A stretch of 64,000 nucleotides of DNA. It comes from Phyllobates terribilis (taxonomy: Eukaryota). A model generated the notes under the pieces. The model searched no databases and had not been told where the DNA came from. It saw nothing but the letters and a program-made list of their open reading frames with translations. Below, in pieces: positions 794 to 39,803 of the stretch (position 1 is the first letter of the stretch; each line of letters starts with the position of its first letter). A program made the translations under genes and the position numbers. The DNA lies in assembly GCF_046119375.1 (NCBI RefSeq), contig NW_027362763.1:903650001-903714000 (forward strand), read 5' to 3'.

Positions 794-2324
794 GGTTATG
801 TTCACACATCATGTTTTTTTTATGCCTTTTTTATGCAAATTTTCAGCTGCGTTTTCCAGAACCAGCAAAGTCTAAGAGATTCCAGAATTCTTAGTTCACA
901 TATCATGTTTTTTTTTTCGTTAAGGATTTTGTGCTTTGCATGGTTTTTTGAAAGATAGAGCTTGTCACTTCTTTCAGTGTTTTATTCAGAGTTTTTTCAC
1001 CCATTGGAAGTAATGGGTGATGAAAAAAACGCTGAAAAAAAAGCACCAAAAATGAAGGTATCAAGTTTTCAGCGTTTTTTCAGCGTTTTTTTGTGCCTAA
1101 ACCAGAATGAGATTTTTTTTTCACCGAACTTTATGTACTTGCATAACAGAGACAAAAGGACAGTGAAAAAAACGCTGAAAAAAGCATCAAAAATGCACCT
1201 AAAAAAGCAAAAACACAAGAAAACAGCAACAAAAATCCTGAACAACTTCCTGGCAACAGATCAGGTTTTGCTTCAGAAAATCGACGCAGAAAAAAACATG
1301 ATGTGTGAATGACGCGCCCCTGGGCCTGCTGTGTCGCGCAGCGTCTCGCGCACGGGGGCTTACCCGGAACCGGATCAGATGAGGGTTGTAGTCTCCGAGT
1401 GGCGGGGACCCGGTCCGTGCCCAGGGAGTCAAACTCAGTGTGTGGCAGTCTTGATAGATGTTATTTGAGTGTCGACTACGCCACCCGTTGATTTGCAGCT
1501 ATGGAGCTGCCGCTGCAGGGCAGACCGCTGAGGCCGGTGTAGAATTGTGCAGCGTGATAGTATAACCCCCAACGGGAGGGGTATGGCCTCAGGGCAGCCG
1601 ACGTGGAAGATGGGGGTAGCAGGAACCACTCAGAGACGGTGCAGTGTAATTCAGGGTCTTTACTGGTAACAACGATAGACCCTCCCGGAGTACTTGCTAG
1701 CGAACGGGGCCTGGTCAGTCCTTGAGCAGATGGGATCTCCCCTGGCCAGGCGGAGTTGTAGGCCTCCCAAACTGACTGTACTCTTCTGGCTACCTTGCTA
1801 GAAGCGGATATAAGTAGCCCACGTCCCTGAGTGTACCGTGTGGTGCTCACCCGTATGGCCGGTGACTCGGGGCCTTCTAATGGCTTCCGCTCCACGATGG
1901 CGGTGCTGGTCCCACGCGTGTGACCGTGCCTTCGGGTTTCTGGGCCTGAGGACCTGAAATCCCCTGCCGGTCGGCTTCTGCTGCTGGGTAAGAGTTAGTC
2001 CCCACAGCCTCGGACGCCGGGTCCGGTAAGAAAGCTTCTCAGTCAGGGCGAGCTCTGCAGCTGCCAGCCCCTGACTCGTAGTAGTATTGCTCCCACTGAG
2101 CTTCTGCTGTTTCTTCCTATGACTGTTTCTCGTCTCTACTTCTTCTCTACTCCTAACCCTGCCTCAGCCCCGGGTTTATATAGGGGAAGTTCTTCCCCTC
2201 CCAAGACTGGGCAGGAGGTGTGGCATGCACAGGATCCCTGACCAAAGGACCTCCCACCTGCTCTCAGACATAACATTACATTACTGTGGAAACCAGACCC
2301 CTGGGGTGCCACATGAACATAGCC
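794..2324. mobile_element. PIF/Harbinger-like MITE (about 520 bp) interrupted by a solo LTR
   Basis: TIRs GG(T/C)TATGTTCACAC / GTGAACATAGCC with a TAA 3-bp TSD. Confidence 0.7.
1310..2313 (-). mobile_element. Solo LTR (1,004 bp) of a related family
   Basis: Minus strand TGTGGCACCCC...GGCGCGTCA, TSD TGAA; U5 similar to elements A and B; nested in a MITE. Confidence 0.88.
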
Positions 2325-4376: not shown

Positions 4377-4758
4377 CTAAAGCAAAATATTCTATGTACG
4401 TAATATGGCATAAAATGCGACATAATACTCAACTGCAAAAAAAAATTTGACATGGTGTCCAAACTTTGCAATCTCCTTATAAGTATATTAATGAATTTAA
4501 AAGTTACAACATATTACTTTTAGTGGAGAATTTACAGCAGAATCACAGCATAAATATTATCTAGTAGTTAATATTTATATTTAAGCACAATATAAGTGAT
4601 TTGATTAATTATTTTCTTAATAATATTGCATATCAATGCTACTTTTCTACTACAAACACTTTTAGTAGCACTAACATTTTCTTCAAGCAATCATCTATTG
4701 AGAAATATAATGACTATCATTAAGGGGGTGTCTAGTCTAGGAAGATACATCTACATAC

Positions 4759-7428: not shown

Positions 7429-8590
7429 CTGTATATGTTATGCCATACAATAAATGGATTGAAAAAAAGCAGTTACTTGCAACAAAAATACATTTCTGTC
7501 AACTTGGTGCACAAAATTTTACTTGCAATATATGTGATTATAACATTACATTAATAATATACAGTAGTTCACTTCAGATATCTAAAAAAAACTAATTTTA
7601 CTTTGAACTTTGGTGAGCCTAAGTCGAACCTTCAGTTATATCTTAGACATTTGTATATGTAGAAATTTCCTTATATACTGTAGCATTAATGACAGAATGT
7701 CTCTGGCTTAGTTTTCAGTCTGTTTCAAGTTACATGTATTAATTGGAGGAATTCACAATAGTCATGCTATAAATATATTTCCTGACTATATAAGTGTAGG
7801 CTTTACTTTAGGTTACCAAACATGAACCTCACATAACTGCTTTCCAGAAATATAGACAACTTTAAGTCCTTCTACTAAAGACTAACCGTTGTTTTAAATG
7901 ATCAGTCCTGGCAGAGAAAGAAGCTGATTTCTCTGATAAGGTATATTACAAAGTTTCTTATGCTCATGTGTATTATTGCTTTATGAAATAAAAATCAAAG
8001 CGACGGTTACTCTTTAAAGACATATTTCCATCTCATTAAGTCATGGCATATCACTGGGATATGCCATCACTTATTGGTCAATGGAGGTTTGATTTCTGGC
8101 ACACTTACGAAGTCTAAGAATAAAGGGGCCACAACTCTGCTTCAGCACTGCATCACCTTTACAGTTCTTCCCGAATAGAGACACTTCTGGGTACCCGGCT
8201 ATGCTGGAAATGGCAGCTGACACCACTAATTTGGATGGAACTATGATGAAGAAGGTAACCCCTCTAAAAGGGACAAATTGTGAAGCAGTGCTACAGCTTC
8301 TTCATTCTCAGGATCAGTAGAGGTCCTAGAGGTCAAACCCGCGGCGATCATTAAGTAATGGCATATCTTAGTGAAATGCCATAATTTATGGAACAAGGAA
8401 TATGCCATTAATTAGTTAATGCTATTTCAGTCATTTTAAGTATTTAGATTATTTTCTAAGTAAATATAAGTTTCATAAATTAATAGAATTAATATTTAGA
8501 AGTCATGTTTAATTAAAGGGGGTTATCTGGTCTAGAATATCCATTTCAAACACTTTATTAGGGCATTCAGAACCCCCATCTATTAATCAT

Positions 8591-19665: not shown

Positions 19666-19827
19666 NNNNNNNNNNNNNNNNNNNNNNNNNNNNNNNNNNN
19701 NNNNNNNNNNNNNNNNNNNNNNNNNNNNNNNNNNNNNNNNNNNNNNNNNNNNNNNNNNNNNNNNNNNNNNNNNNNNNNNNNNNNNNNNNNNNNNNNNNNN
19801 NNNNNNNNNNNNNNNNNNNNNNNNNNN
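19666..19827. other. Assembly gap (162 N) flanked by TA-rich microsatellite
   Basis: Run of N between tatac and gtatatac. Confidence 0.99.
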
Positions 19828-20842: not shown

Positions 20843-21190
20843 TTAAAGGAGTTGTCTCATCAAAGACAACACTTTCAGGATGTGACCTATTCGTGGCATC
20901 CCAGGTAATTAGCTATTTTTTTTTTTTTTAAATTCTGGGGAAAGACAAGTACAGCTATACATTTCCTCTGCAGTAGCAACATTACTATTAATAGCCAATC
21001 TTTTAATACAATGATGGCTAAAGTCTGCCAGAATAGGTATAAACAATAACGAGGGTCTCCCAATTCTGGTTCAAAGAGGTGGGACCCAAAAGAGGGATAC
21101 CCTTCTATAATGTCCATACTGTATTACCTAATAGGACAAATGAATAGGGGTTGTCTTCAATCAAAACTGCATGAGAGGATTTGGTACTAA

Positions 21191-22336
21191 TGACGCGCCC
21201 CCTGGGCCATGTTGTTAGGGATACCCGGAGCCGGATCAGATGGGGGTTGTAGTCTCCGAGTGGCTGTGACCCGGTCCGTGCCCAGGGTGTCAAACTCAGT
21301 GTGCGGCAGTCCTTGCAGATGTTATTAGTGTCGACTACGCCACCCGTTGATTTGCGGTCAAAAGGCCGCCGCTGCAGGATGGTCCGCTGAGGCTGGTGGT
21401 GTGTGTGCAGCTGTGGTAGTATAACCCCCAACGGGAGGGGTATAGCCTCAGGGGGTCAGACGTGGAGGATGGTGGTTGTGAAGGTGCAGCAAGGAGACTC
21501 AGAGGCATGAAATGCAGTTCAGGGTTTTTACTCACTGGTGTTGCTCGGGTCACTCTGTACAGCAGTGACCACCCAAGCCGTGCTGCGTCCACCAGGTGCG
21601 GGACTCGGTCAACTCCCGGGCAATTCCTGAGTATGGTCCTGAGCTCCCTTCTTCTCTCTCTCTCTGGCCGTTCCCACCAGGGATCCACCTGTGTCCGGCT
21701 CCCTCGGGTCTCTTGGTGGTTGAACCTTCTCTGGCTTCCCTGACCCTATGCTCGGTGTGCCATTCTGGTGGATTTGGTGAGGGTCGTGGCAAATCTTGCC
21801 CACGGCCTCCGGTTCCTGGCTAAGGTTTGCTTTGGCCTCCGCCAGCTTGGGATCCGGTACCCTTTTGCCGACCCTTCACCCTTATCAGTTCTCATACGGG
21901 CTCTTGGGGTCCCCTCTCGTCCTGCGCCTCTGGGTCCCTCTTCCTTCTCCTCTCCTGGAGTTACTGCTGACTCACAGACTGACTGACTGACTGACCCTGT
22001 CCTAAGATGGTGCCCACCTTATATACTCCCTCTATGTGTGAGCTCAGGTGACCAGCACCCAATGAGCTCCTACATTTACCCAGACTACTCCCCCTATCTG
22101 CCCCTACACTACTGGGATGTTCCACCCCCCTCCCACTCCAGCCAGGGACAGACGCTGTCGTACCTGCACATATACTGGTGGGAGTACCGTTGTTCTGTCC
22201 CCCAGAAATGGGATGTATGTAGTGCATGCAGCCTACTAGCTCAGTTCCATACTCCATCCTTACCCGGGAGTGGAATACCACACCTCTGGGTTGAGGTGCA
22301 ATACCCCTGTAGCAGCCGAATCCTCAGGGTGCTACA
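21191..22336 (-). repeat. 3' LTR of element A
   Basis: Direct repeat of 24693-25838 with about 5 substitutions seen by eye; preceded on the minus strand by the PPT CCAGGGGGGAA. Confidence 0.92.
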
Positions 22337-22780
22337 TTCCCCCCTGGTAAATCACAGCACGTCCTCGGGCTGTAAAAGAATAAAAACATCCAAAAACATA
22401 CGATTTTTTTTCATAACATAAACATATAAAACATATAAACATTATCAGCAGCATAAACTTTTCATATAAACCTTCTTGTTCCTCCGGCCACGGTGCAACT
22501 TGTGACCGGGTAAAGTGCAACAGTCTCTTCTGGAAAAACACAGTTCCTTACAAAACCAGTAGGGGGCGCCTTAGAAAGCGCAACTATGTACAAAAGGGGA
22601 ATATGGCCGCTCTCAGTCCTCGGCCAGTGGGGAAAAAGAATGGCTGTTCACAGTCCTCAGCCTGTTAGGGGATAGGGACACACGGGTATTCACTTGCTGG
22701 TCCCGACGGGGACTACACTTTGGTAGCAGCAGTTTTTGTACCCACACGGGTAACTATTTACATATTCTATTTACAGTTCA

Positions 22781-24712
22781 TCAGTGGCGGTATGCTCTTG
22801 GCTGAGGGTAATCTTTAGACCCGTCCGGGTCCTCTTGATCCTCCTCACCCCGTAGCTCCTCCTCAGTCAGTCTATGCACATGCAGGGCATACGGGCCCTT
22901 GGCGCACTGATGCCGGGTGAAGGTGACCTCATCACCCAGGTATAGGTCACGACCTCTGTGTCCCTCCGGTAGGTGGGACTCGACATCACTTCTGGTCACG
23001 AAGACGTCGCCGGGGGTGTGATGGTCTCTGATGAAGCCCCAACCGTGCTGCAACTGGAATTTAATTACAGTCCCGGTGGCACGGGGACCGTGGGCTGCAC
23101 GGGGGTTCCTTCGGGTCCGGCTCTTTTGTTCTGCACTCTTTACTTGCAGCCGCTCCTCGCAGACCCGCCTCTCTTTCCTCTCTCTGTCGAAGACCTCTAA
23201 CTGCTGCCGGCAGCACTCCGCACGCTCAGCTGCGGCCGCCCGGGTCTCCTCGGTGAATCCCATTAGGTCCTCACCGGTAAAGTCCCACTCGAACTGGGCT
23301 TCCTCCAACGAGAGTGGGGTGATCTTGGCGGGCGCCGGAGCCGGGATCAGGGGCTCATCCATGGGTCTTTCTTTCCGGAGTCGGGGATGGTGGTACTCCG
23401 GTGGCCACACAGGGGGCTGCCCATCCGGGCAGGTGTCTTCACCCAGGTGTGGCGCTGTGGACGTTGAGGGCGCGGTGGTGGTAACGGCGCCCGGGCTCAC
23501 CAGGCCTTGCGACCAGGCCTGGGGCACCCTGAAGGTGAAGGGCACCGTGAAGACGGCGGCGCCCGGGGTTACTCGGCCCAGCGACCAGGCCGGTGGCATG
23601 ATGGTGGTAGAGGGCGCAGTGAAGACGGCGGCGCCCGGGGGTACTCGGCCCTGCGACCAGGCCGGTGGCGCTTCCTGCTTGGCCGCGCTCAGGGTTGAGG
23701 CGCGTGACGTTACAGGGGGCGTGGCCGCAGCTCCGGCCGCTTGAGGCCTAGCTTGGAGCGATGACGCAGCGGCTACGGGAACGGTGAGTGGGGCTTCGGG
23801 CTCTGCGACGGGGAGCTGGGGCAGGTTTACGGCTTCTGGGCACGGCATGTTGTCGTCCCCATTACCTGCCTTCATCTCTTCGGCTCCCTCCGCGGCGTCG
23901 TCTCCGGCCGTCGTCCATCCTTCGCCGTCCTCAGAGGTGGACCTGCTCCTCGCTGCGGGTGGCATGCTTCACTGGCGGGCTCCGGCCTGCCGGGCCATCT
24001 CTCGGGTCCACTCCGCCAGTGTTTCCTGCTGCACCCGGGCCATCCTTCGTGCTAGGCCCTCCAGCGCGGTCTGTGCACGCTCCCGATCTCCGGGGAGCTG
24101 CGCCAGGATCTCCAGCAGGCCTTCTGGAGTGGCGGCCTGCAACAGGCTCCTGACCACTGGGTCAGTGCTGCCTGACTCTCCCTCCATCTCCGGGTGTGTT
24201 CTCTCTAGACTCTTCCAAGCTGCTCCCATCTTCACTCTTTTGTTCTGTATCCGCCCACATTGGGGGTCGTCCTGGGGCAACTTTGTGATTGCCAGTTCCA
24301 GGGGCAGTTCCCTCACGCTGATGGACATATCAATCATCACAGTCTCTGCTGGTGGGGGCGGTTTCCACTTTTGGCGCCATTTTCGGTCCTGGCCCACGAT
24401 GTGAGGTGGCCTCTTGCCATCCTTTGGCACGCCCATAATGGCGTCCGCTCTGCAAAGGCGGGAAATCTTCTCTGATGGCGGGAATCGCTTCCCAGTGGCG
24501 GGAAACACTGCAGATGGCGGGAAAAGACTGCAGATGACGGGCAAATGGCGGGAACTGATCCGAGATGGCGTCCGATGGCGGGGACCCTCTGGAACCGGCG
24601 GGAGACTTCTTTTTGAGGTAAATGCGAACTTTTCTTCAGGCACGCAGTACCCGGTGGTTGCGGGCACGTGATCCTGCCGACTACGCCAAAGTTGACGCGC
24701 CCCCTGGGCCAT
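22781..24712 (-). pseudogene. Element A ORF: Pro/Ala-rich and coiled-coil protein with C-terminal cold-shock domain, split by one in-frame TGA
   Basis: ORFs 23969..24712 and 22781..23965 are in the same frame, separated by TGA at 23969-23971, and colinear with the 701-aa ORF of element B. The cold-shock domain GTVIKFQLQHGWGFIRD...GDVFVT...LYLGDEVTF...KGPYALHV lies at 22868-23074. Confidence 0.85.
24671..24688 (-). promoter_or_regulatory. Primer-binding site (tRNA-Ser) of element A
   Basis: Minus strand TGGCGTAGTCGGCAGGAT, complementary to the 3' end of vertebrate tRNA-Ser(AGA/TGA) (...ATCCTGCCGACTACG-CCA), located 4 nt after the LTR. Confidence 0.88.
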
Positions 24713-25838
24713 GTTGTTAGGGATACCCGGAGCCGGATCAGATGGGGGTTGTAGTCTCCGAGTGGCTGTGACCCGGTCCGTGCCCAGGGTGTCAAACTCA
24801 GTGTGCGGCAGTCCTTGCAGATGTTCTTAGTGTCGACTACGCCACCCGTTGATTTGCGGTCAAAAGGCCGCCGCTGCAGGATGGTCCGCTGAGGCTGGTG
24901 GTGTGTGTGCAGCTGTGGTAGTATAACCCCCAACGGGAGGGGTATAGCCTCAGGGGGTCAGACGTGGAGGATGGTGGTTGTGAAGGTGCAGCAAGGAGAC
25001 TCAGAGGCATGAAATGCAGTTCAGGGTTTTTACTCACTGGTGTTGCTCGGGTCACTCTGTACAGCAGTGACCACCCAAGCCGTGCTGCGTCCACCAGGTG
25101 CGGGACTCGGTCAACTCCCGGGCAATTCCTGAGTATGGTCCTGAGCTCCCTTCTTCTCTCTCTCTCTGGCCGTTCCCACCAGGGATCCACCTGTGTCCGG
25201 CTCCCTCGGGTCTCTTGGTGGTTGAACCTTCTCTGGCTTCCCTGACCCTATGCTCGGTGTGCCATTCTGGTGGATTTGGTGAGGGTCGTGGCAAATCTTG
25301 CCCACGACCTCCGGGTCCTGGCTAAGGTTTGCTTTGGCCTCCGCCAGCTTGGGATCCGGTACCCTTTTGCCGACCCTTCACCCTTATCAGTTCTCATACG
25401 GGCTCTTGGGGTCCCCTCTCGTCCTGCGCCTCTGGGTCCCTCTTCCTTCTCCTCTCCTGGAGTTACTGCTGACTCACAGACTGACTGACTGACTGACCCT
25501 GTCCTAAGATGGTGCCCACCTTATATACTCCCTCTATGTGTGAGCTCAGGTGACCAGCACCCAATGAGCTCCTACATTTACCCAGACTACTCCCCCTATC
25601 TGCCCCTACACTACTGGGATGTTCCACCCCCCTCCCACTCCAGCCAGGGACAGACGCTGTCATACCTGCACATATACTGGTGGGAGTACCGTTGTTCTGT
25701 CCCCCGGAAATGGGATGTATGTAGTGCATGCAGCCTACTAGCTCAGTTCCATACTCCATCCTTACCCGGGAGTGGAATACCACACCTCTGGGTTGAGGTG
25801 CAATACCCCTGTAGCAGCCGAATCCTCAGGGTGCTACA
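24693..25838 (-). repeat. 5' LTR of element A
   Basis: TG...CA termini, TATATAA box and AGTAAA polyA-like signal on the minus strand; followed by ACTT and the PBS. Confidence 0.92.
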
Positions 25839-26836
25839 CTAACATCACAGAACACTTGGAGAACAATTTGCATACTGCGCAGAAGTTGTTAAAACTTGTT
25901 TTTTTTTATAGAGTTTTTATTACTGTTGCTATGCAAAGATGTGTTATGAAATGTCTTTTTAGCCCCAATAAAGCTGTTATAGCATACAGGGTCATGAAAA
26001 GTGATGACAGGTTCCTGTTAAGGAAAGATAAAAATGTTATAGTCACAAGCTCCGTCATATGAGTCACACAAAATAAAAATACCACGGATAGAACCTATTA
26101 GCTTCTTCTTTACCCTACAGCGTTTACTGAAACAATACATTCCCTGCACACAAAAAACAATTGAAACTGACAGCAAATGGGCAACATTCAAAAAGCTTTG
26201 GAAATATTTATCATACTCAGATATGACACAACCTAATTGGCTACAATTAGATTTAACGCTACATCCATGTTATTGAGTTGCTTCATCTACCTTGTCATTA
26301 TTTGGGACATGCATCTTGTGCAGCAGCTGCAGGATGGTGCAGGGGCTTATGTGAACCTTACTAGGGTTATGCCAAAACAGTTCCACCAATCACACACACA
26401 ACCAGGCTCAGACTGACCCACAGGGCACAAGTGAATACCCCGGTCGGTCTCTGTGTAGGAATAAACTCTCAGTCCCTCACCCCTCTACAAGAGCAGTGCT
26501 TGGCAAAGTACATTTAATGCAATATATAAAGAGGGAATGTAGAGCATGTAATCATTTATTTAATAAATTACCAAGTTTATTAAAATGTAGATGCATATAG
26601 TAAAGTGGCAGACCATGTTGTATCCACCCTCCCAGACGCCATTTACTTGATATTGCCACAGTGGTCCCTTCCTCCCTAATCATCTGGCAGCTTCTTGCTG
26701 TTGCCTAAAGTGACTGTCCAGTACTGATATTAATAGCCTATCCTGAGGAAAGTTCATCAATACAGATTGGCAGTGGGTGAGACACCCACAGTTCCGTCCA
26801 TATTCATCTAAAGCTAGTTACCCGAAAACTTCAAAT

Positions 26837-27917
26837 TTGTACGCTGATGACACCCAGATCTACCTCTCTGGCCCAGACGTCACCTCTCTGCTATCCAGAA
26901 TCCCAGCATGTCTAGCAGCCATATCCTCCTCCTTCTCCTCTCGCTTCCTCAAGCTCAATGTGGAAAAAACTGAACTCATCCTCTTTCCTCCATCTCACAT
27001 ATCTTCTCCACCTGATCTTTCTATCACAATAAATGACATCACACTTTCCCCTGTAACGGCAATCCGCTGCATCGGAGTAACCCTTGACTCTGCCCTGTCC
27101 TTCAAACCCCACATCCAAGCTCTCACCACCTCCTGTCGCCTCCAGCTTAAAAATATTTCCACAATTCATCCTTTCCTCAACCCTCACTCTACTAAACTGC
27201 TTGTGCATGCCCTCATCATCTCCCACCTCGACTACTGCAACATCCTCCTTTGTGGCCTACCTGCTAACACTCTCACACCCCTCCAGTCCATCCTTAACTC
27301 TGCTGCGCGACTGGTTCAAATCTAGCCTCGCTACTCCTCTGCTACTCCCCTTTGCAAATCTGTCCACTGGCTCCCAATTGCCCAGCGTAACCAGTTCAAA
27401 CTACTAACACTGACCTACAAAGTCATCCATAACCTCTCTCCTCCGTACATCTCTGAACTAATCTCTCGATACATTCCCTTACATAATCTCCGGTCCTCCC
27501 AAGACCTCCTTCTCTCCTCCACACTTATTCATTCCTCACCCAATCGCTTCCAAGATTTCTCCCGAACATCCCCCATCCTATGGAATTCTGTGCCTCAACA
27601 AGTCTGATTATGTGCTACATTTGAATCCTTCAGACGGAACCTGAAAACCCATCTCTTCAAACAAGCTTACAGCCTGCCATGACCTTGCTTGCTGCCACCT
27701 AAACAACACCGGAACTACTGCAACCCCTCAACCTACTGTCTCCTTCTCTGTTCCTGTAGATTGTAAGCCCGCAAGGGCAGGGCCCTCTTCCCCCTGTATC
27801 AGTCAATCATTGATAGTTTGTTTACTGTAAGAGATATTTGTAATTGGTATGTAACCCTTTCTTATGTACAGAACCATGGAATCAATGGCGCTATATAAAT
27901 AAATAATAATAATAATA
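26837..27917 (+). mobile_element. 5'-truncated L2/CR1-clade LINE (RT C-terminus and 3' tail)
   Basis: LYADDTQIYL...FLKLNVEKTELILFP...ISHLDYCN RT motifs, in-frame TAG at 27323-27325, 3' end GGCGCTATATAAATAAA(TAA)n. Confidence 0.88.
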
Positions 27918-29286
27918 AAAAGAAAAACCACAACGAGGATTTCTTCAATAAAGTTATTGACTTATTCTGTATATCAGCACTATTATGGTCATGCCTTTAC
28001 TTCACATTGGTAAAAAATGCTGACAGGTTCTCGTTAAAAACAACTGTTACAGAATGGGGAGCTAATTTTTAAATGTATTTTAACTATCCTTTGTGGTCAT
28101 ACATAAAACAAATGGTTAAAACAGACAACTATTTCTCTTATTTTCCCTCTGATGTTACCCTATATCAGCAAAAAAATAAATAAGGAGAACATGAAAGTGA
28201 CAAAAAAATGAAGCACTGTGTATCACGAAAAAAAGATGCAAAAATTACTTGAATATCCAAATGAGAAAAAAAAATTCAGATCTTTAAACTGCACATACGT
28301 ACAAAAAACAAAAACAAAATGCGCCTGGTCAAAAATGGGGTTAAATGGTTCAATCTTGATTTCGTTAAGGGTGTGAATATCTATGCAACCACATTAATTT
28401 AGATCTTTATTTTACCACCTGAAAAGAATTCAGTTTATTTTTCAGTTGAATTGTACAGATTATGTGAGCTACTTAAACTCAGATTCAGGAGTGTACTTAT
28501 CTGATCTGGATCTTGTACTTGTCTGATTTGGGCACTTGCATCAACAAGTGCCAGCAGATTTTATACCTTCCTAAGAGACGTGCTCTCAGTGTGTTAGAGC
28601 ACAGCAAGATCATTAATTGGTGGAGCAGCCTCTGCTGACTGCCGCGTACCAATTAGTGCTGTATACAATTGGCAACGTAGAAAAGACAACTCATCTCTCT
28701 CCATCGCTTTCTGATAACAGCAATGTTGGGGTTCCCTTTCACCATGACAAGCATTGATCTAGAGGAAGGCCAGAGAGTGCGAGGGGATTGAAAGAGGTGA
28801 TAAAAATGCATGATTCTTTTTGGAAAAGGCTCGTTCCACCTCACACGCTATGCCGCCCTAGGCACTTGACCTCTAGTGTCTAATGACAAATACAGCTGTG
28901 TCTTTAGACACTCCATGTGCCATTGGGTAGTGGTGTCACTATGAGGCACTGTATTCTTACTAAAAGCATTGTGATACAACATGCATTAGAGCATGAGACA
29001 ATTTGGTTAGGAATTCCATAACTATGTGCATCTATGCCAAATCAAAGTAATTTAAATGTTTACTATAGAACTTTATTAGCTTGCTGGATTCAAATTATCT
29101 CTCTATAGTCACTTTTATGGCTTCCACTATCCCCTTCAAACAGTTGATTGTTTGCATGGAAGAATCATCCTGCCATGCATTATTCTTGTAATGGCAGCTT
29201 TAGGAGAAGTGTAGCATTAAATGATGGTCATTCTGGCTCCTAGAATGGAGTCCTGAGGTGGAGACCCTGTTCTGCGATGTTTATAA

Positions 29287-29528
29287 GTAGTGTTGAGTGA
29301 ATTTGTTCGGCATTTCAAATTCGGGATCGTGATCAGGATTCCGGCTTGTTCGCGCAAAAAAATCGGCTCCGCCCCAGAACATCTCTGATTTGTCACAAAG
29401 ATTACATCTGTGTGACAGCGTGGCAAATCAGGGATGTTCATGGGCGGAGCCAATTTTTTGGCGCAAACAAGCCGGAGCCCGGAACACGAACCCGAATTTG
29501 AAATGCCAAACAAATTCGCTCAACACTA
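29287..29528. mobile_element. Short MITE with TAGTGTTGAG TIRs
   Basis: TAGTGTTGAGTGAATTTGTTCGGCATTTCAAATTCGG ... CCGAATTTGAAATGCCAAACAAATTCGCTCAACACTA. Confidence 0.65.
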
Positions 29529-30134
29529 TTTATAAGCCTTAGTAGGGCATGTGGGCAGGTGATATTATTTTGGGACAAACCTTTATAAAAAAAAAAAACC
29601 AGATGCCCGGCCTTGGGAATAATAAATTAAATTAAAAAATAATTACTAAAATTCTAAAACAGTCACATATTTAGAAAGATTAACAGGTGTCAAGTCAGAA
29701 ATGTGAAAAATGTTATTTGGCTTTTTCAAAACACAGTAACATAGCATAAGACAAGCAAAATACATCTACAATCACTACACTTTGCATTATAAACATTATG
29801 TATGCCAACCTATGGTAATGCACAATCTGGCTTTGCTCCCAGTAAATGTATGCTTCACAAGGGATAGTTTAATGGAAGTGACTGAATAGACTGAATTAAC
29901 AGGTCTATTCATTTTCAGACAACTTATTTCAGTTTTAGATGTTGCTCATGCTAAGGCTATGTTCACACATCATATTTTTTTTTGCGTCACAAATCTGCAG
30001 CAAAACCTGATCACTCCAGGGAGGTTTGCTGCAGATTTTTCTGCCAGTTTTAGTGCTTTTTTTATGCATTTTGGTGCATTTTTTCAGCGTTTTTTTCACT
30101 GTTCTTCTTGTCCTTCTGTCTCCTTTTATGCATG

Positions 30135-31339
30135 TGTAGCACCCTGAGGATTCGGCTGCTACAGGGGTATTGCACCTCAACCCAGAGGTGTGATATTCCA
30201 CTCCCGGGTAAGGAAGGAGTGTGGAACTGAGCTCAGATAGACTGCATGCACTACATACATCCCATTCCAGAGGAGCAGGCCGACGGTACTCCCACTTAGA
30301 AATGTGCAGGTACAACCGAGCCTGTTCCTGGCTGGAGTGGGAGGGGGGTGGTACATCCCATGTAGTGTAGGGGCAGATAGGGGGAGCAGTCTGGGTAGTG
30401 ATAGGAGCTCATTGGGTGCTGGTCACCTGAGCTCACACATAGAGGGATATATAAGGAGGGCACCAACTTAGATCAGGGTCAGACGCTGAGAACAAGTCAG
30501 TTGGAGAGGAGAGAGAAGGAAACAGCAGCCCTGGAGAGAGAGAGAGTGGAGCAGAGAAAGACCCAGAGGGGGAAGACTGAAGGGACCCAAGAACCCAAAT
30601 TAGAGCACCGGGTGAGGAGTCAGCAAGAGGGTACCGGAACCCAAGCTGGTGGGGGCAAAGACATTCCCCAGCCAGAGACCGGAGACCGTGGGCAGTGTCT
30701 GTCACGGTCACCCACCACATTCACCCCGAAGGCACACCACATGAAGGGTCAGGGAACCCAGGGCCAAGGGTGTCCCAAAAGAAGGCCCGAGGGAGCTGGA
30801 CCTAGGTGAATCACTGGTGGGGACGGCTGAAGAAAGGACAGAGGGAGAGCTCAGGGCCACGCTCTGGACTTGTTTGGGGGTTGGCCGGATCCAGGACCTG
30901 GTGGACGCAGCACGGCTCGGGTGGTCACTAGCAGCTGGAGTGACCAGTACAACATCAGCAGTAAGTAAACACCCTTAACTGCACAACCCGAGTCTGTCTT
31001 CATTGCCGGCTGCATCGCACCACCACAACCCCCATCCTCTGCGCCTGTCCCCTCTGAGGCTATACCCCTCCCGTTGGGGGTTATCTCACCAAGCTGCGCA
31101 CCCACCATCAGCCTCAGCGGACCCTGCAGCAGCGGCGGCCACAGTGACCGCATCACAACGGGTGGCGTAGTCGACACAAAAGAACTTTAGTAACATCTGT
31201 AAAGCTGCCACATCACACTGAGCTTGACGCCCTGGGCACGGGACCGGGTCACAGCCGCTCGGAGACTACAACCCCCCATCTGATCCGGTGCCGGGTATTC
31301 CCCTCAAAAAAAAAGGAATATGTCCCAGGGGGCGCGTCA
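30135..31339 (+). repeat. 5' LTR of element B
   Basis: TG...CA termini, TATA-like GATATATAAGG near 30445 and AGTAAA near 30964. Appears identical to the 3' LTR (the ORF-track translations of both copies are identical). Confidence 0.93.
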
Positions 31340-33425
31340 ACTTTGGCGTAGTCGGCAGGATTACGTGCCCGCAACACCCGGGTACTGCGTGCCTGAAGAA
31401 AAGTGCAAGTTTACCTCAGAAAGAAGTCTCCCGCCGGTTCCGGAGGGTCCACGCCATCGGACTCCATCACCAGTCATTTCCCGCCGATTGTCCGCCATTT
31501 CCAGCTTGTTCCCGCCATCTGCAGAGTTTCCCGCCACTGGGCGACGCTTCCCGCCAAAACCGCAGATTTCCCGCCTTGGAAGAGCAGCGGACGCCATTAT
31601 GGGCGTGCCAAAGGAGGGCAAGAGGCCACCTCCCATCGTGGGCCAGGACAGAAAATGGCGCCAAAAGTGGAAACCGCCCCCACCAACAGAGACTGTGATG
31701 CTGGAGGTGTCTGTCAGCGTGAAAGAACTCCCCCTGGAGCTGACAGTCACCGAGTTGCCCCGGGACCGCCCTCGAAGTGGGAGGAGACGAAAGAGAAGAG
31801 AAAAGATGGGTGTCGCTTGGAGCAGTCTGGAGCGAGCGCACCCGGAGGCAAGAGGTCTAACAAGGAGTAGCGGAGAAGCTCACCCGGAGATGGAAAGCAA
31901 GCAGGACAGCACCGGCCCGCTGGCCAGGAGTCTGCTAGAGACCGAGGAAGGAGGGCAGAGCAGCACCGGCCCGCTGGCCAGGAGCCTGCCGGAAGCCGAG
32001 CAGAGCAGCACCGACCCGATGGTCAGGAGCCTGCTAGAGTCCACAACCCCGCTAGGTCTAGCGGAGATCCTAGCGCAGCTCCCCCGAGACCGGGAGTGTG
32101 CACAAACTGCCCTGGAGGGCCTCGCAAGGAGGATGGCCCGGGTACAGCGCGAGATACTGGCGGAGTGGGGCCGGGAGAGGACCCAGCAAGCAAAGACCAG
32201 TCAACGGAGCACGCTACCCTGGAAGAGGAAGCAGACCGCCTCTGAGGATGGCGCAGGAGGACCCAAGGCCGGAGACGGCGCCGAGGAGGGAGCCGAACGC
32301 ATGGAGGCAGGTAAAGGGGACGCCTATACCCCAAGCCGTGACACCGCTTACCTGCCCCAGCTCCCCGTCGCAGAGCCCGAAAGTCCCCCTGCTGTGCCCG
32401 TAGCCGCCAGGTCACCGCCATGGACTAGGCCCCGACCGGAAGCCGCCGCAGCGACCCCTGTGACGTCACGCGCCCCGACCCGGGGCGTGACCAAGCAGGA
32501 AGTACCACCAGCCTGGTCGCAAGGCCTAGTACCCCCGGGCGCCGCAATACCAACAGCGCCCCCTACCTCCGCGGAGCCTCCGGCCTGGCCGCAAGGCCAG
32601 GTAGCCCAGGGCGCCGCCGTCCTAACGGTGCCCTTCACCTTCCAGGTGCCCCAGGCCTGGCCGCAAGGCCTGGGCAACCCGGGCGCCACCACCACCGCGC
32701 CCGCGCCCGCAATACCTAGGGTGCCACACCTGGGGGAGGACCTCTTCGGCCAGCTCACATGGCCGGACGGGCGGCCCTTCATCTGGCCCGAAGGGTACCC
32801 TGAGCTGGAGCGGCAGCAAAGACTAGGGCCCTTGTGTGAGCCCCTAATCCCGGCTCCGAAGCCCGTGGCTCGGGTCTCGCCTCCTCTAGCAGAAGCCCAA
32901 TTCGTGTGGGACCCCACGGGAGAAGATTTGATGGGGTTCACCGGAGAAACTCGGGCAGCCGCAGCTGAACGTACAGAGTGTTGCCGTCAACAGCTGGCAG
33001 AGTTTAAGAGAGAACGGGAGGAGAGGCGGGTCAGAGAACAACAGGCCCAAATCCAGAGCGCGGAGCAGAAGAGCCGGACTAGGAGGAACCCCCGTGCAGC
33101 GCATTGTCCCCGCACCATCGGGACAGTGATAAAGTTCAACCCGCAGCATGGGTGGGGCTTTATTCGGGACCGTAACAACCGCGGTGACGTTTTTGTGACC
33201 CGCAGAGACGTCGAGTCCCACCTGCCGGAAGGTCACAAAGGCCGTGACCTCTACGTCGGAGACGAGGTCACTTTCACCCGGCACAAGTGTGCCAAAGGAC
33301 CTTACGCCCTCCACGTACACCGCTTGACGGAGGAGGAGTTGCGGTACGGGGAGGAGGAGTCAGAGGACCCGGACGGGTCTGAAGAAACATCATATCAAGA
33401 AAGAGCAGGAGGAAGACGCCGTTGA
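31320..33425 (+). CDS. Element B ORF (701 aa, or 608 aa from the internal ATG at 31599): basic N-terminal region, helical segments, three 24-aa Pro/Ala repeats, coiled coil, C-terminal cold-shock domain and acidic tail
   Basis: Uninterrupted ORF. Residues GTVIKFNPQHGWGFIRDRNNRGDVFVTRRDV...LYVGDEVTF...KGPYALHV (33120-33326) align with the cold-shock consensus GTVKWFN..KGFGFI...DVFVH...L.EG..VEF....KGP.A.NV. Confidence 0.9.
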   Translation: MSQGARQLWRSRQDYVPATPGYCVPEEKCKFTSERSLPPVPEGPRHRTPSPVISRRLSAISSLFPPSAEFPATGRRFPPKPQISRLGRAADAIMGVPKEGKRPPPIVGQDRKWRQKWKPPPPTETVMLEVSVSVKELPLELTVTELPRDRPRSGRRRKRREKMGVAWSSLERAHPEARGLTRSSGEAHPEMESKQDSTGPLARSLLETEEGGQSSTGPLARSLPEAEQSSTDPMVRSLLESTTPLGLAEILAQLPRDRECAQTALEGLARRMARVQREILAEWGRERTQQAKTSQRSTLPWKRKQTASEDGAGGPKAGDGAEEGAERMEAGKGDAYTPSRDTAYLPQLPVAEPESPPAVPVAARSPPWTRPRPEAAAATPVTSRAPTRGVTKQEVPPAWSQGLVPPGAAIPTAPPTSAEPPAWPQGQVAQGAAVLTVPFTFQVPQAWPQGLGNPGATTTAPAPAIPRVPHLGEDLFGQLTWPDGRPFIWPEGYPELERQQRLGPLCEPLIPAPKPVARVSPPLAEAQFVWDPTGEDLMGFTGETRAAAAERTECCRQQLAEFKREREERRVREQQAQIQSAEQKSRTRRNPRAAHCPRTIGTVIKFNPQHGWGFIRDRNNRGDVFVTRRDVESHLPEGHKGRDLYVGDEVTFTRHKCAKGPYALHVHRLTEEELRYGEEESEDPDGSEETSYQERAGGRRR
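31344..31362 (+). promoter_or_regulatory. Primer-binding site (tRNA-Ser) of element B
   Basis: TGGCGTAGTCGGCAGGATT is a 19-nt complement of the tRNA-Ser 3' end, with an ACTT spacer after the LTR CA. Confidence 0.9.
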
Positions 33426-33893
33426 GTGCGGCAGAGCAGGAGCTGTAAATAGTTACCCAATCGGGGTATATAGAAACTGAAACTGTTGCTGCTAAAATAG
33501 TCCCCGTTGGGACCAGGGAACTGTTTACCCGTTAACCCCTTCATCCTACAGGCTGAGGACTGTGAGCAGCCATTCCCTACCCTCTACCTGGCCGAGGACT
33601 GAGAGCGGCCAACTTTCAACTTCCCCTGTATATAGTTGCGCTTCCTAAAGCGCCCCCTACCGGTTTTATAGAAAACCAGTTTTTCTAAGAGACTGTCGCA
33701 CTTTTCCCGGACACACGTTGCACAGTGTCCGGAGGAGGAACCAGAGACAAGAGAAGTCTACGAGAATGTTTATATAAAAAGTTTTATATATATATAATGT
33801 TTATATGTTTTATATGTTCATATAAAAATTTTGTATGTTTTGGTGTTTTATGTCTTACAGCCCGAGGACGTGCTGTGATTTACCAGGGGGGAA

Positions 33894-35098
33894 TGTAGCA
33901 CCCTGAGGATTCGGCTGCTACAGGGGTATTGCACCTCAACCCAGAGGTGTGATATTCCACTCCCGGGTAAGGAAGGAGTGTGGAACTGAGCTCAGATAGA
34001 CTGCATGCACTACATACATCCCATTCCAGAGGAGCAGGCCGACGGTACTCCCACTTAGAAATGTGCAGGTACAACCGAGCCTGTTCCTGGCTGGAGTGGG
34101 AGGGGGGTGGTACATCCCATGTAGTGTAGGGGCAGATAGGGGGAGCAGTCTGGGTAGTGATAGGAGCTCATTGGGTGCTGGTCACCTGAGCTCACACATA
34201 GAGGGATATATAAGGAGGGCACCAACTTAGATCAGGGTCAGACGCTGAGAACAAGTCAGTTGGAGAGGAGAGAGAAGGAAACAGCAGCCCTGGAGAGAGA
34301 GAGAGTGGAGCAGAGAAAGACCCAGAGGGGGAAGACTGAAGGGACCCAAGAACCCAAATTAGAGCACCGGGTGAGGAGTCAGCAAGAGGGTACCGGAACC
34401 CAAGCTGGTGGGGGCAAAGACATTCCCCAGCCAGAGACCGGAGACCGTGGGCAGTGTCTGTCACGGTCACCCACCACATTCACCCCGAAGGCACACCACA
34501 TGAAGGGTCAGGGAACCCAGGGCCAAGGGTGTCCCAAAAGAAGGCCCGAGGGAGCTGGACCTAGGTGAATCACTGGTGGGGACGGCTGAAGAAAGGACAG
34601 AGGGAGAGCTCAGGGCCACGCTCTGGACTTGTTTGGGGGTTGGCCGGATCCAGGACCTGGTGGACGCAGCACGGCTCGGGTGGTCACTAGCAGCTGGAGT
34701 GACCAGTACAACATCAGCAGTAAGTAAACACCCTTAACTGCACAACCCGAGTCTGTCTTCATTGCCGGCTGCATCGCACCACCACAACCCCCATCCTCTG
34801 CGCCTGTCCCCTCTGAGGCTATACCCCTCCCGTTGGGGGTTATCTCACCAAGCTGCGCACCCACCATCAGCCTCAGCGGACCCTGCAGCAGCGGCGGCCA
34901 CAGTGACCGCATCACAACGGGTGGCGTAGTCGACACAAAAGAACTTTAGTAACATCTGTAAAGCTGCCACATCACACTGAGCTTGACGCCCTGGGCACGG
35001 GACCGGGTCACAGCCGCTCGGAGACTACAACCCCCCATCTGATCCGGTGCCGGGTATTCCCCTCAAAAAAAAAGGAATATGTCCCAGGGGGCGCGTCA
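33894..35098 (+). repeat. 3' LTR of element B
   Basis: Immediately follows the PPT, ends GCGCGTCA and is followed by TSD CATG. Confidence 0.93.
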
Positions 35099-36867
35099 CA
35101 TGTACATAAAGTTTCCCAAAAAGAACCCCATTCTATTTGGCATCAAAAACGCTGAAACAAATTTTGATGCATTTTTGGTGCGTTTTTTAAGCGTTTTTTT
35201 TCACCATCCATTACTTCCTATGGGTGAAAAAACACAGAAAAAATGTTAAAAGAAGTGACATGCTCTATTTTCCAAAAACAATGCAAGGCACAAAATCCTG
35301 AACAAAAAAAAACCATGATGTGTGAACTAAGAATTCTGAAATCTGGTACTGCAAAAGGCAGCAGAAAATTTGCATAAAAAAAGGCATTAAAAAACGTTGA
35401 AAAACCATGACGTGTGAATATAGCCTAATGGTCTTTGCACAGTGTTCTCTGAAGGGACAAGAGTCTGTTCTTTGAATCTCTATATAGTACGTATTCCTAT
35501 CAGATATATTATTTTTTATTCACTTTCTGGAGTTTGTAGGGTTAGGAAACCTATGAGTTATATACAGCCACGAATGCCAAATCAATTGATGGGTTACAAC
35601 TCCTAGACAAAGAGTCAACATTTATATAGTAATTTCAAACCACCTGATCTCATTATATAAAGAGCTAAGTAGGCAAGCTGCTAAAATATGTACTCTTACC
35701 CATTCAAAGTGCCAACCACTACTTCTCCCTTGTGTCTAACCTGGTGCTTACTGCCTGTTGTTAAGTGTAATCTATCAAGCAGTGAAGATACCAAAACAGA
35801 TTACAGAAAGTAGGGATGGGTCATTGTCTATCTGCTTCTTCTTTCCTTTCTGTCAAACTGCATACAGTTGTAACAGGGATGCTGGCTATTAGTTTGAGCC
35901 TTTCAAACTACTAATCAAACCTTGTGTAATGCATGATAGAAAGTTAAGGAAAGAAAATTTCAGCACCTATAGTGCTAGAGGACAGGGATGAAAACTAGTA
36001 TGTGCTCCAAAAGTAATTTTAAATTATTGTTGATGAGGGCAGCATGCTACAAGTGTTATGTGAAAAGGCAGGTATGTGTAATATCTAGTGATGAGAGAGC
36101 ATGCTCGTTACTCCAGATTTACGAGCATGCTCGGGTGTTTTCCAAGTATCTTCAGCGTGCTCGGGTATTATGTTTTAGTCACTCTGCGCTCATGATTTGC
36201 GACTGTTTGACAGCTTTAATACATGTGAGGAATGCCTGTTTCTTAGGCATTTCTCACATGTATTAAAGCTGTCAAACAGTCGCAAATCATGAGCACGGAG
36301 TGACTGAAACATAACACCCAAGCACGCTGAAGATACTCGGCGAGCACCCGAACATGCTCGCTGAAAGGGTTAATAGAACATACTCGCTCATCACTAGTTA
36401 AAACTTCTGCAGAAGAGGAAAAGCCATTAAACCCCCTCAAGTGGTAGGGCCTGGTTGTGACCACAGCTCCTGTTGCCCCTATTTGTACACCTCTGCCTGG
36501 ATCAGGAACTGGACTGAAGAAATAAAGATGCTAAACTATATGTTTGTTGTAAGTTTTATGTTCTGTACACTTTAGGAAATGACTTTGTAAACACATTAAA
36601 CAGCTGCAGGAGAATACCCACTGAACCTAACAAGCACCCATATTACAGCATGGCGTCACTCCACTTTAATGGAACAGAGAAATTGGTGAAAAAACAAGAA
36701 TAATCTTACACATTAATAGCTTCCTTGTCTCTCATTGCAATTTTAACATTCCAACATATGTTGTCAATAAGAAACACATGAGTTATTTGTTCTTACAGAT
36801 GAACAATAGTCTAAATGATACCAGAGGGAGAAAAATGACAGAAGAACATTTGTGAAACCATACTCAC

Positions 36868-37488
36868 CACAACTAAGGTTGCTTTCTGCTTTTCTTGCCC
36901 ATGGTGGGATGTTCCATAAGTCGTTTTCCCAATTTATAACATTTCCCTTTATTTCACAGCTGAGGTTTGCAAGAGTACGTGAATCCATTGCAAAGTCCCA
37001 AAGACGGAAGTTGTAAATATCCCCTTGTAGTGGCTCTATTCCAGAACTGCAGGAGCCCAGTGTTAAATTCCCATTACCTGGAATGGAAAGGTCTTTCGCG
37101 TCTGGACAGGAAACGGCTTTGTAGCTATTTTTTGTGCTCACAAATACATGATCTGAACTACTATTCCAGATAACACACAGCTGTTGAAATGATTCTGTAA
37201 AGAAGTCTGTACTGCCATCTAAAAGCAGGGCAGGATCAAGAATGCATGGAACATCCAAGACAGTCAACACATGTCCATAAGCTTCTTTTCCAAAGCTTAA
37301 ACGGTCTTTGTTTGAGGTTTGGTAAGAAAAAGCCTTCCAGTTCTCTTTGCTATTGTTCGTTTTGGTAGCCTCAAAGCAAATAGTTAATTGTTTTAAAAGG
37401 GGAACAGATACTTTCGATGACAAAGAGACAAGACCTGAACTTTGGTTTTGTGGAATAGTGACTTTTTGGTTTTGCAACGACACAGCGA
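36868..37488 (-). CDS. Same adhesion GPCR, pentraxin/LamG-like (PTX) exon (621 bp, phase 1-1)
   Basis: Acceptor ttttttcatag| and donor |gtgagt. Translates as VAVSLQNQKV...LTICFEATK...WKAFSY...QQLCVIWN...GDIYNFRLWDF...KGNVINWENDLWNIP...KAESNLSCG, matching the ADGRG6 PTX exon (VAVSLRNQKV...GDIYNFRLWNF...KAESNLSCG). Confidence 0.93.
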
Positions 37489-39803
37489 CTATGAAAAAAA
37501 AAAGAAAATAGAAATTAATTCCAAAATCATGAAGCAAATTAACATTACATTTTCAGGAATAATCTATCAATTGGTGGTGAAGCAATATGAATAAATCCTT
37601 ATATTAATTAACAAACAACTTATATGTTCACCATAGAATATTCTTTTAATTGATATACTTATAGAGAAGGTATTGCTACTTCTTTAAAGGGGTTGTACTA
37701 TTAGGACAATTATAGCTCATATGTCCCATTTGTCCAAATGAACATCATAGTGATGGTCCTTTGCTCCGGCTAACCATCTATTAATAAAAGTGAGGAGCTG
37801 CTGTAAAAGAGGACTATGGAATAAAACATTTCTCCAGCAGTGACTGATGTAGATGAAATGTGCTTCTGGAGAGATAACAGTTGATTGCGGGGGATTTCAG
37901 ACTTTGAACCTCTAAGGTCCAAGCAAATTTTACTCTTAAGAACCACACATAATTGTTTTCTACATCAAGATTGTTACAATACAATGGTGTGCAGACTAAG
38001 AGCTCATGCAAGATATATTATTTTAGTGGATTGTCTTCCGTATATTACAATATTATAAAATTATTACATCAAGCTCTCGGCAGATCTTAAAGAGGTTGTC
38101 TCAAGCTCTTAATTGGTTAAAATGTCAAATAACTTGTAAAAACAAGCAACTTTGCAATCTACTTCATAGTAAAAATCGTTTCCACTCTCGACAGAGGGAT
38201 TTTTAATTTTATAGATTACTGCACGTTGACTAGGTTATTTGCCGCCCTGTAGTGGCCAGTTACCTAAGTAAGGAGCATGCAGCACTTATATGATCTATGT
38301 TAAAGAGCATGCATGTGCTGCTCTAAATCAGGCTGGTGAGAGCGTGGGACGGTGCTCAAGTTGACAAAAGCAGTTCAGCTATCTGCTGGTCTGATCTGTC
38401 AATCTTCACGAGTGCACTGCTCCCTGCAACCAGGAAGTCAGGAATTTGGGGAGCAGTGCGCTCATGAAGAAGAAGATTGGAACACTCCTTTAAAGGGGTT
38501 GTCCAGAAAAAATAATCTTTGTCCATGGGATGAAATATGTAAAAAATAACAAACTTAGCCATAATCACCTACCAGCATCTATCTGGATACATAGCAGGCC
38601 TCTCCATAGTCTGCACAGAGTGGGTGACGATTGGTGAGTATGGCCGAACTGACCTTTTTTTATCTTGCTCAGACAACCCGTTTAACTGCTGTGACGTGTG
38701 ACATTTACAACATAGGTTGTTAAGGAAAGTATGAAGCTGGCTCAGGAGCTGAACCTTTTTCATACCAAGCAGATGCCAGCTGTGTTTCATAGCTGGCATC
38801 TGCCTTTAACAGCAGCGACCATAATCTGCTGTGATCACTGCAGCTTAACCACTTATTAATTATTATGCCACTATTAATCTATGATGACGCGATTATGGTG
38901 AACCATATGAGGACTGGTGAAGGTACTGAAACTACCATCTAGGCCCTCCTAAGCTATCAAACTATTGCAAGCACAAGTCAATGACAAGACAAAAAAATAC
39001 AGTAAAAGTAAAAAAAAAGTTATAAAAAATAAAAAAAGTTAAACAACCCTGTTATTTCCCAATCAAAAGTAAAGAAATAAAAATAAATAAACATGTGTGG
39101 TATCATGATATAAAAAAGTCCAGTCTATTAAAATTTAAAATGGTTTAAATCAGATGTTAAACAAAAAAGAAAATAAAACGGAAGCGCTAGAATTTTCGTT
39201 CACTGCACTTTGCAAAAAAAATGCAAATAATAACATTCAAACTGTCAGATGTATCCCATAATTGTATCACTAAAAACATCAGCTCAGGGCCCCCAAAAAA
39301 GCCCCGACACATGGATAGATTTTTATTTTTCAACAAATTTCATAATTTTTTTCACAACTAATATGTAAAAAAAAATGGGACCAGTTTGGTATTGCTGTAA
39401 TCATACTAATCTGAAGAATCAGGTTGCCAGTTTATTTTTTCTATATAATGAATGTTGTAGAAACAAAACCCAATAAAAACAACTACTACTTTTTTTTTCA
39501 CAATTTCACTGCACTTGGATTTTTTTTTCCCGCTTTCCATTACATCCTATGGTAAAATGAATGCCAATATTCAAAACTGCAACTTGTCCTGCAAGAAAAA
39601 GCCTTCATATGGCTATGTCGATGGAAAAATATAAAACCGTTTTGGCTCTTGGAAAAAGGGGGAGAAAAAAAACAAAGGTGCTAAAAAGAAAAATTCCTGA
39701 GTCCTTAACGGCTTAACTTATATGTTGCCTTTTAGCAAACTTTTTCTTCAGTAATCTCAGGTAAGGTAAAGTAAATTCACAAACTGAATCCATTCATACT
39801 TAC

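Follow-up and report, generated by a model that had tools for sequence, protein, structure and literature searches.

Two LTR elements of Phyllobates terribilis whose only gene encodes a protein with a cold-shock domain under purifying selection

We describe a family of LTR elements, so far known only from poison frogs (Dendrobatoidea), in which the single gene encodes a protein ending in a cold-shock domain (CSD). Two copies, A and B, were found in the window, that is, the whole 64-kb stretch of Phyllobates terribilis DNA that was analysed. The CSD and the charged helix preceding it are under strong purifying selection in lineages that were still transposing, and it seems that the element itself needs the CSD. 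On balance, the sequence evidence favours a non-autonomous LTR family whose lone CSD protein would act as an RNA chaperone or packaging adaptor in helper-driven spread.

Results

Structure of the elements

Elements A and B have direct LTRs with TG..CA ends and short target-site duplications, the structural signature of an LTR element (Table 1). The two are inverted relative to each other and separated by 4.3 kb, differ in 20-25% of their sequence, and form two GC-rich islands (56-60% G+C) within the AT-rich window. The paired LTRs are 99.56% identical in A and 100% identical in B, so both insertions are recent, as had been claimed from the sequence. Between A and B the LTRs are 77% identical by BLAST, or 80% over the aligned columns of a global alignment, and the proteins are 71% identical; this agrees with the expectation of at least two subfamilies. 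A third variant of the family is present in P. terribilis.

The DNA flanking element B on both sides is one continuous older repeat, which also occurs, reversed, at the beginning of the window. This paralogue contains one copy of the 4-bp target of B, with one mismatch, and thus confirms both the ends of B and its duplication. The original prediction that we are dealing with a replicating element, and not with duplicates of a host gene, is well supported: A and B are independent insertions, each bounded by LTRs and a target-site duplication of its own, the orientations are opposite, and an empty-site paralogue of B exists.

The PBS-like 18-mers of A and B consist of the same letters, beginning with TGG; they lie 4 nt past the 5' LTR and inside the ORF. 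ARAGORN found no tRNA gene in the 64-kb window. The polypurine tract is G-rich and identical in A and B, and so are the final ~40 nt before the 3' LTR. The LTRs contain no canonical AATAAA or TATAAA, and the sole LTR signal common to A and B is TATATA at about position 313. The window contains no Rfam match, and no helper element was found in it.

Table 1. Positions of the LTR elements and of their parts in the window
Feature	Position	Strand	Basis and remarks
Element A, whole LTR element (4648 bp)	21191..25838	-	self-BLAST and junction reading
Element A, target-site duplication TTAG (element orientation)	25839-25842 and 21187-21190
Element A, 5' LTR (1146 bp, TG..CA)	24693..25838	-	self-BLAST and junction reading
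Element A, PBS-like 18-mer	24671..24688	-	junction reading
Element A, sole ORF, one in-frame stop, no frameshift	22781..24712	-	collinear and in frame with the ORF of B
Element A, counterpart of the tandem repeat of B	23485-23669
Element A, CSD block (75 codons)	22850..23074	-	Pfam and alignment
Element A, polypurine tract, abutting the 3' LTR	22337..22345	-	junction reading
Element A, 3' LTR (1146 bp)	21191..22336	-	self-BLAST and junction reading
Element B, whole LTR element (4964 bp)	30135..35098	+	self-BLAST and junction reading
Element B, target-site duplication CATG	30131-30134 and 35099-35102
Element B, 5' LTR (1205 bp, TG..CA)	30135..31339	+	self-BLAST
Element B, PBS-like 18-mer	31344..31361	+	junction reading
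Element B, sole ORF, 701 codons, uninterrupted	31320..33425	+	ORF and stop counts
Element B, helical segment, residues 233-295	32016..32204	+	AlphaFold2; helix 258-295 with pLDDT about 80-87
Element B, 72-nt (24-residue) tandem repeat	32511..32670	+	within the proline-rich part of the ORF, which is disordered and nearly neutral
Element B, long charged helix, residues 542-589	32943..33086	+	AlphaFold2, pLDDT 66-92; directly N-terminal of the CSD
Element B, CSD block, residues 601-675, five-stranded barrel	33120..33344	+	Pfam, AlphaFold2, Foldseek
Element B, polypurine tract, abutting the 3' LTR	33885..33893	+	junction reading
Element B, 3' LTR (1205 bp)	33894..35098	+	self-BLAST
Uninterrupted paralogue of the older repeat that received element B	815..1309	-	self-BLAST

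Coding capacity

The 2.5-kb internal region contains one long ORF of about 700 codons and nothing further. The 5' LTR contributes the ATG, which falls within its final 20 nt, and the frame continues across the PBS-like site. Base composition predicts 17-18 internal stops in an ORF of this kind; B has none and A has one. The remaining five frames have 9-25 stops over both copies (11-23 in B). From the divergence of the LTR pair, about four substitutions are expected in the ORF of A since its insertion, and its single stop fits this number.

Pfam detected no gag, protease, reverse transcriptase, RNase H, integrase or env domain and no CCHC zinc knuckle in either copy; the CSD is the only domain. 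The gag and pol frames that define an autonomous LTR retrotransposon or ERV are thus absent, and only 468 bp separate the stop codon of B from its 3' LTR. Therefore the element is non-autonomous and cannot transpose alone.

The encoded protein

The AlphaFold2 model of the B protein, for which the seven available relatives served as input, has a mean pLDDT of 50 and is disordered for the most part; three parts are confidently folded, namely the helical segment, the charged helix and the CSD. A coiled coil had been considered for the charged helix and was dropped, as the segment is rich in E, R, K and Q; it may be a single stable helix.

The CSD is recognised by the PF00313 profile with 35.1 bits in B and 35.0 bits in A (cut-off 27). 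In the model it forms a barrel with strands at residues 598-607, 612-617, 623-627, 649-657 and 660-668 (pLDDT 83-89). All Foldseek matches in the PDB are cold-shock domains, including CspA (TM 0.88, rmsd 1.6-1.9), YB-1, YBX2, CRHSP-24, Lin28 and Unr, and the matches in BFVD are CSD and S1-like proteins only. A Gag-like or capsid fold was rejected, because neither database returned anything other than CSD and S1-like folds.

The RNP1-equivalent motif GWGFI aligns with GFGFI of solved cold-shock domains, and the RNP2-equivalent motif is VFVT where these have VFVH, the histidine being replaced. The aromatic positions of the RNP motifs are invariant, or W/Y, across the seven family members. The CSD keeps its aromatic nucleic-acid-binding face.

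Among solved structures the best profile match is to YBX1/YBX2: the family profile scores 35.8 bits against vertebrate Y-box proteins and 32.9 bits against bacterial CspA, and the beta3-beta4 loop is long, as in eukaryotic domains. Y-box proteins bind single-stranded RNA. Unlike them, the frog domain lacks the RNP2-equivalent histidine, has its own invariant loop residues and resides in a mobile element. It does not qualify as a member of the Y-box family, with about 30% identity, a score of 23.7 bits for the single sequence, and no N- and C-terminal Y-box regions. Identity to any solved CSD is likewise only about 30%.

Relatives

HMMER, run exhaustively against 1.84 billion representatives, yielded 29 matches, of which the convincing ones are five poison-frog proteins. 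One of them, P0001 of P. terribilis, is 85% identical to B (96% in the CSD and 75-90% elsewhere). The others, P0002 of Ranitomeya variabilis, P0004 of Ranitomeya imitator, and P0003 and P0006 of Anomaloglossus baeobatrachus, have 47-57% identity in the CSD. All five share the architecture of the element-encoded proteins, with the CSD as the sole Pfam domain (PF00313, 23.7-36.9 bits), and four of the five gene models are single-exon. Across the seven family members, 22 of the 75 columns of the CSD show no variation; among them are the aromatic positions as well as five residues of the family-specific loop. Beyond poison frogs, HMMER and word-index protein searches found only distant multi-CSD proteins of protists, and there is no YBX protein among the 29 HMMER matches. 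Residues 1-271 of B have no relative among the 1.84 billion representatives, and an exact look-up did not find the protein of B itself.

Selection along the reading frame

The original prediction of selection on the CSD came from an alignment of 75 codons with 65 identical residues and 10 replacements, 36 of the identical residues being encoded by different synonymous codons. Aligning A (minus strand, 23074 to 22850) to B (33120-33344) without gaps reproduced all these counts exactly. The interval given for A, 22868-23074, covers 69 of the 75 codons, and the block continues to 22850. Five replacements had been placed in one loop; four do fall in the beta2-beta3 loop (B residues 618-621), whereas the fifth, S/R, follows strand 3, where the long beta3-beta4 loop of the AlphaFold2 model begins. 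As for the other replacements, two are in the beta1-beta2 turn, and only one lies well inside a strand. Nucleotide identity over the block is 172/225, with 10, 5 and 38 differences at codon positions 1, 2 and 3.

Selection was estimated pairwise from the two DNA copies, with the CSD block taken as residues 599-673 in the register of the local alignment, two codons off the register above. In this block pN is 0.09 and pS is 0.72 (Fisher p 2e-18). The resulting pN/pS of 0.12 (bootstrap 0.06-0.21), together with omega of 0.07 by LWL85 and 0.01-0.04 by GY94-ML, bears out strong purifying selection on the CSD.

The charged helix is as constrained as the CSD, whereas residues 1-160 and 301-520 show little or no selection. 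In the numbering of B, pN/pS is 0.62 at the N-terminus (residues 1-160; codon positions 1/2/3 differ at 15/12/16%, without periodicity), 0.32 in the moderately constrained helical segment (161-300; 23/17/37%), 0.64 in the proline-rich repeats (301-520; 25/25/31%, without periodicity) and 0.14 in the charged helix (521-598). Over residues 521-675 the three codon positions differ at 17/10/52% (position 3 against positions 1 and 2, p 8e-18), and omega of the helix and CSD together is 0.04 by GY94-ML and 0.07 by LWL85. The silent sites are near saturation, the estimates of dS (1.5-7) are unstable, and NG86 and YN00 were unusable; hence we relied on the proportions.

All eight indels between A and B that fall inside the ORF have lengths divisible by three; elsewhere 8 of 50 do (p 7e-6). 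Thus the frame is kept over the whole ORF, even where residues drift. Residues 1-160, which have no codon periodicity, may serve as an RNA leader and not as protein; the gene model of P. terribilis starts only at the position matching residue 272 of B.

As the LTR pairs are near-identical, at most about 1% of the differences between A and B post-date insertion. It follows that the constraint acted on lineages still transposing.

Excess silent divergence of the helix and CSD block

The silent sites of the helix and CSD block have diverged about twice as much as the neighbouring non-coding DNA (p-values from 7e-10 to 6e-5). Between A and B, 52% of the third codon positions and 50% of the fourfold sites of the block differ, compared with 24% of the adjacent 3' UTR and 20% of the LTRs. 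Third positions differ in 31% of cases in the proline-rich part and in 16% over residues 1-160. Divergence is also higher, at 33-40%, in the weakly constrained flanks of the block, namely residues ~473-538, the tail of the ORF and the initial ~100 nt of the UTR. The LTR ends, the leader and the polypurine-tract region have 90-97% identity between A and B in 100-nt windows. A and B are collinear across and around the block, with no indels and no junction scars. An excess of silent divergence in the module is also expected from its repeated import out of a selected host gene.

Two sources of the excess were rejected: CpG hypermutation, as non-CpG third positions of the block still differ in 48% of cases, and a shift of codon or base composition between A and B, as GC3 and the composition of fourfold sites are alike.

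The simplest reading would be a mosaic, in which an older block of ~0.8 kb, swapped between related elements by recombination, is embedded in a backbone that is either younger or homogenised and whose LTR ends, leader and polypurine-tract region would be conserved as cis-signals. Alternatively, the excess may reflect a contrast with non-coding parts that are under strong constraint at the nucleotide level. We believe that the helix and CSD module probably predates the rest of the element and was passed between subfamilies by recombination. The suggestion that the domain had been selected over a long period thus applies to the helix and CSD block, which is apparently the older part of the element.

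Discussion

Proposed role of the protein

If the lone CSD protein is indeed an RNA chaperone or packaging adaptor, the cycle of the element could be as follows. The reverse transcriptase and integrase of a helper would act on the LTR ends, the PBS-like site and the polypurine tract. The ORF protein would bind single-stranded RNA, most likely the transcript of the element itself, and, as a chaperone or packaging adaptor, might favour this transcript for reverse transcription by the helper. By analogy, it would fill the role played elsewhere by the Gag nucleocapsid or LINE-1 ORF1p. Retroviral nucleocapsid proteins have CCHC zinc knuckles, and ORF1p consists of a coiled coil, an RRM and a CTD. 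The likeness would lie in a protein with a helix and a nucleic-acid-binding domain that coats or chaperones the RNA of its own element; there is no relationship to the frog CSD protein in sequence or fold. A non-autonomous element needs no protein in principle, and this counts against the chaperone or adaptor role.

More tentatively, one may imagine a vertebrate LTR lineage without Gag and Pol, dependent on a helper and equipped with a CSD RNA chaperone only, in which an old, exchangeable helix and CSD cassette, shuffled among subfamilies, outlives the LTRs around it. This would be a strategy similar to that of ORF1p, of independent origin. We hold such an extended scenario to be rather doubtful.

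Comparison with known elements

Non-autonomous LTR elements that lack pol and keep an ORF include plant LARDs, gag-only derivatives and mammalian MaLR-type elements. They resemble the frog element in having LTRs, a PBS or PBS-like site, a polypurine tract, an internal region without pol, and dependence on a helper. However, their ORFs are gag-derived, degenerate or of unknown fold, whereas the frog ORF ends in a constrained CSD and has no Gag fold. The 4-bp duplication would presumably fit an ERV1-type element, although without pol the frog element is not classifiable. In one dendrobatid genome, elements of the ERV1 type have been reported to be the youngest of the LTR elements (PMC11152451).

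Capture of CSDs by retroelements has already been published: ERVs of birds carry captured CSDs, and the repeated acquisition was interpreted by the authors as adaptive for the virus (PMC12287698). Both systems are LTR retroelements with a PF00313 domain, but the bird ERVs keep gag, pol and env and the position of the CSD in them varies, while in the non-autonomous frog element the CSD protein is the sole ORF. What is new here is the CSD as the sole gene of a non-autonomous LTR element of frogs. We found no paper on a CSD in a frog LTR element or in a non-autonomous one.

Alternative explanations

In the main alternative, the CSD protein would be accessory cargo, once captured from a host and selected in the element for its action on the host cell, for instance on translation, mRNA stability or silencing; a role of this kind has been proposed for the captured CSDs of bird ERVs. 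Bird ERVs of several groups have captured CSDs many times (PMC12287698), the profile fits vertebrate Y-box proteins best, the beta3-beta4 loop is of the eukaryotic type, and a Gag-like fold is absent, all of which would be natural for such an accessory gene. Still, the CSD protein is the only gene, occupies the usual place of gag and begins at the edge of the LTR, and no close host donor is apparent, given about 30% identity to YB-1 and the 29 matches in 1.84 billion representatives. We therefore regard an accessory role as unlikely, though sequence data alone cannot tell an effect in cis from one on the host.

Alternatively, a host gene or another family of elements might have been the main site of the selection, the helix and CSD having been imported from it separately into A and B by recombination or gene conversion. 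The conserved protein and the diverged silent sites would then record the past of the donor and not a need of these elements. Separate import would account for silent divergence over residues 521-675 about twice that of the 3' UTR, the LTRs and the third positions of the proline-rich part, and intronless CSD genes of the same architecture are indeed annotated in Ranitomeya and Anomaloglossus. However, separate imports sit poorly with the collinearity of A and B around the block, and the raised divergence of its flanks fits homologous exchange between related elements better. Moreover, the CSDs of the annotated relatives are far below the 87% identity of A and B. Separate import is thus improbable. 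Least of all do we expect that the two loci are domesticated or duplicated host genes, immobile and flanked by LTRs by chance. The annotation of the relatives as ordinary uncharacterised protein genes would agree with that, but the LTR pairs are identical or nearly so, the target-site duplications are intact and differ between the loci, and the site of B has an empty paralogue. Local duplicates 4.3 kb apart would also hardly be inverted and yet so different in sequence, with a stop in one of them. We consider this explanation very improbable, and helper-driven spread with the CSD protein as an RNA chaperone or packaging adaptor remains our preferred reading.

Significance

Non-autonomous retroelements are usually seen as protein-free hitch-hikers or as carriers of a decaying gag. 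If the proposed role is true, parasites of parasites can invest in an RNA-handling factor of their own, a selected RNA-binding protein other than Gag. It would also be a second, independent recruitment of a CSD by retroelements, after that in the bird ERVs. For the study of genome growth in poison frogs, the elements provide a concrete, datable and currently active family.

Sequences around the elements

Three stand-alone fragments of LTR sequence were observed in the window. They are 71-85% identical, and all correspond to one segment of approximately 260 bp close to the 3' end of the LTR of the element. Either these fragments are what is left of old solo LTRs, or they represent a distinct short repeat which the LTR took up.

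Two unrelated palindromic units, each of about 240-255 bp, have arms of 116 nt that are 87-91% complementary and are separated by spacers of 7-23 nt. In appearance they resemble repeats of the foldback or MITE type. The window also holds an ORF encoding a Tc1/mariner-type transposase (HTH_Tnp_Tc3_2, 80.7 bits, and DDE_3) and a weak reverse transcriptase fragment, whose RVT_1 score of 20.7 bits falls short of the cut-off and which lies in the 4.3 kb separating elements A and B, outside both. A run of 162 N is an assembly gap or a mask.

An open frame of 899 codons, rich in Ser, Thr and Asn and situated within AT-rich DNA, has no Pfam match and probably represents a single host gene exon of very large size. 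Immediately downstream of element B, a further open frame contains a pentraxin domain (PF00354, 37.9 bits) and is likely a host gene exon.

Features of the window
Feature	Positions	Strand
LTR-segment fragment	1355-1617	
LTR-segment fragment	50569-50791	
LTR-segment fragment	61550-61811	
Palindromic unit	29281-29535	
Palindromic unit	36122-36360	
Transposase ORF	54926-56122	+
Reverse transcriptase fragment	26777-27322	+
Run of N	19666-19827	
899-codon frame	4754-7450	-
Pentraxin frame	36767-37537	-
Codons 1-160 of the B ORF (counterpart present in A)	31320-31799	+

Uneven divergence within the elements

The stretch encoding residues 1-160 is the internal DNA best conserved between A and B (86%). 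The frame is open in both elements, with no codon periodicity (differences of 15, 12 and 16% at codon positions 1, 2 and 3), and the annotated P. terribilis gene model starts only downstream, at residue 272. Besides coding for protein, this stretch may serve to the same degree as a leader or packaging region of the RNA.

The region 32735-33535, in and around the block formed by the charged helix and the cold-shock domain, was compared with the remainder of element B, together with the corresponding part of A. Here the divergence of silent and unconstrained sites between A and B is approximately double that seen in the LTRs, in the leader and over most of the 3' UTR. From this uneven divergence, the element looks like a mosaic.
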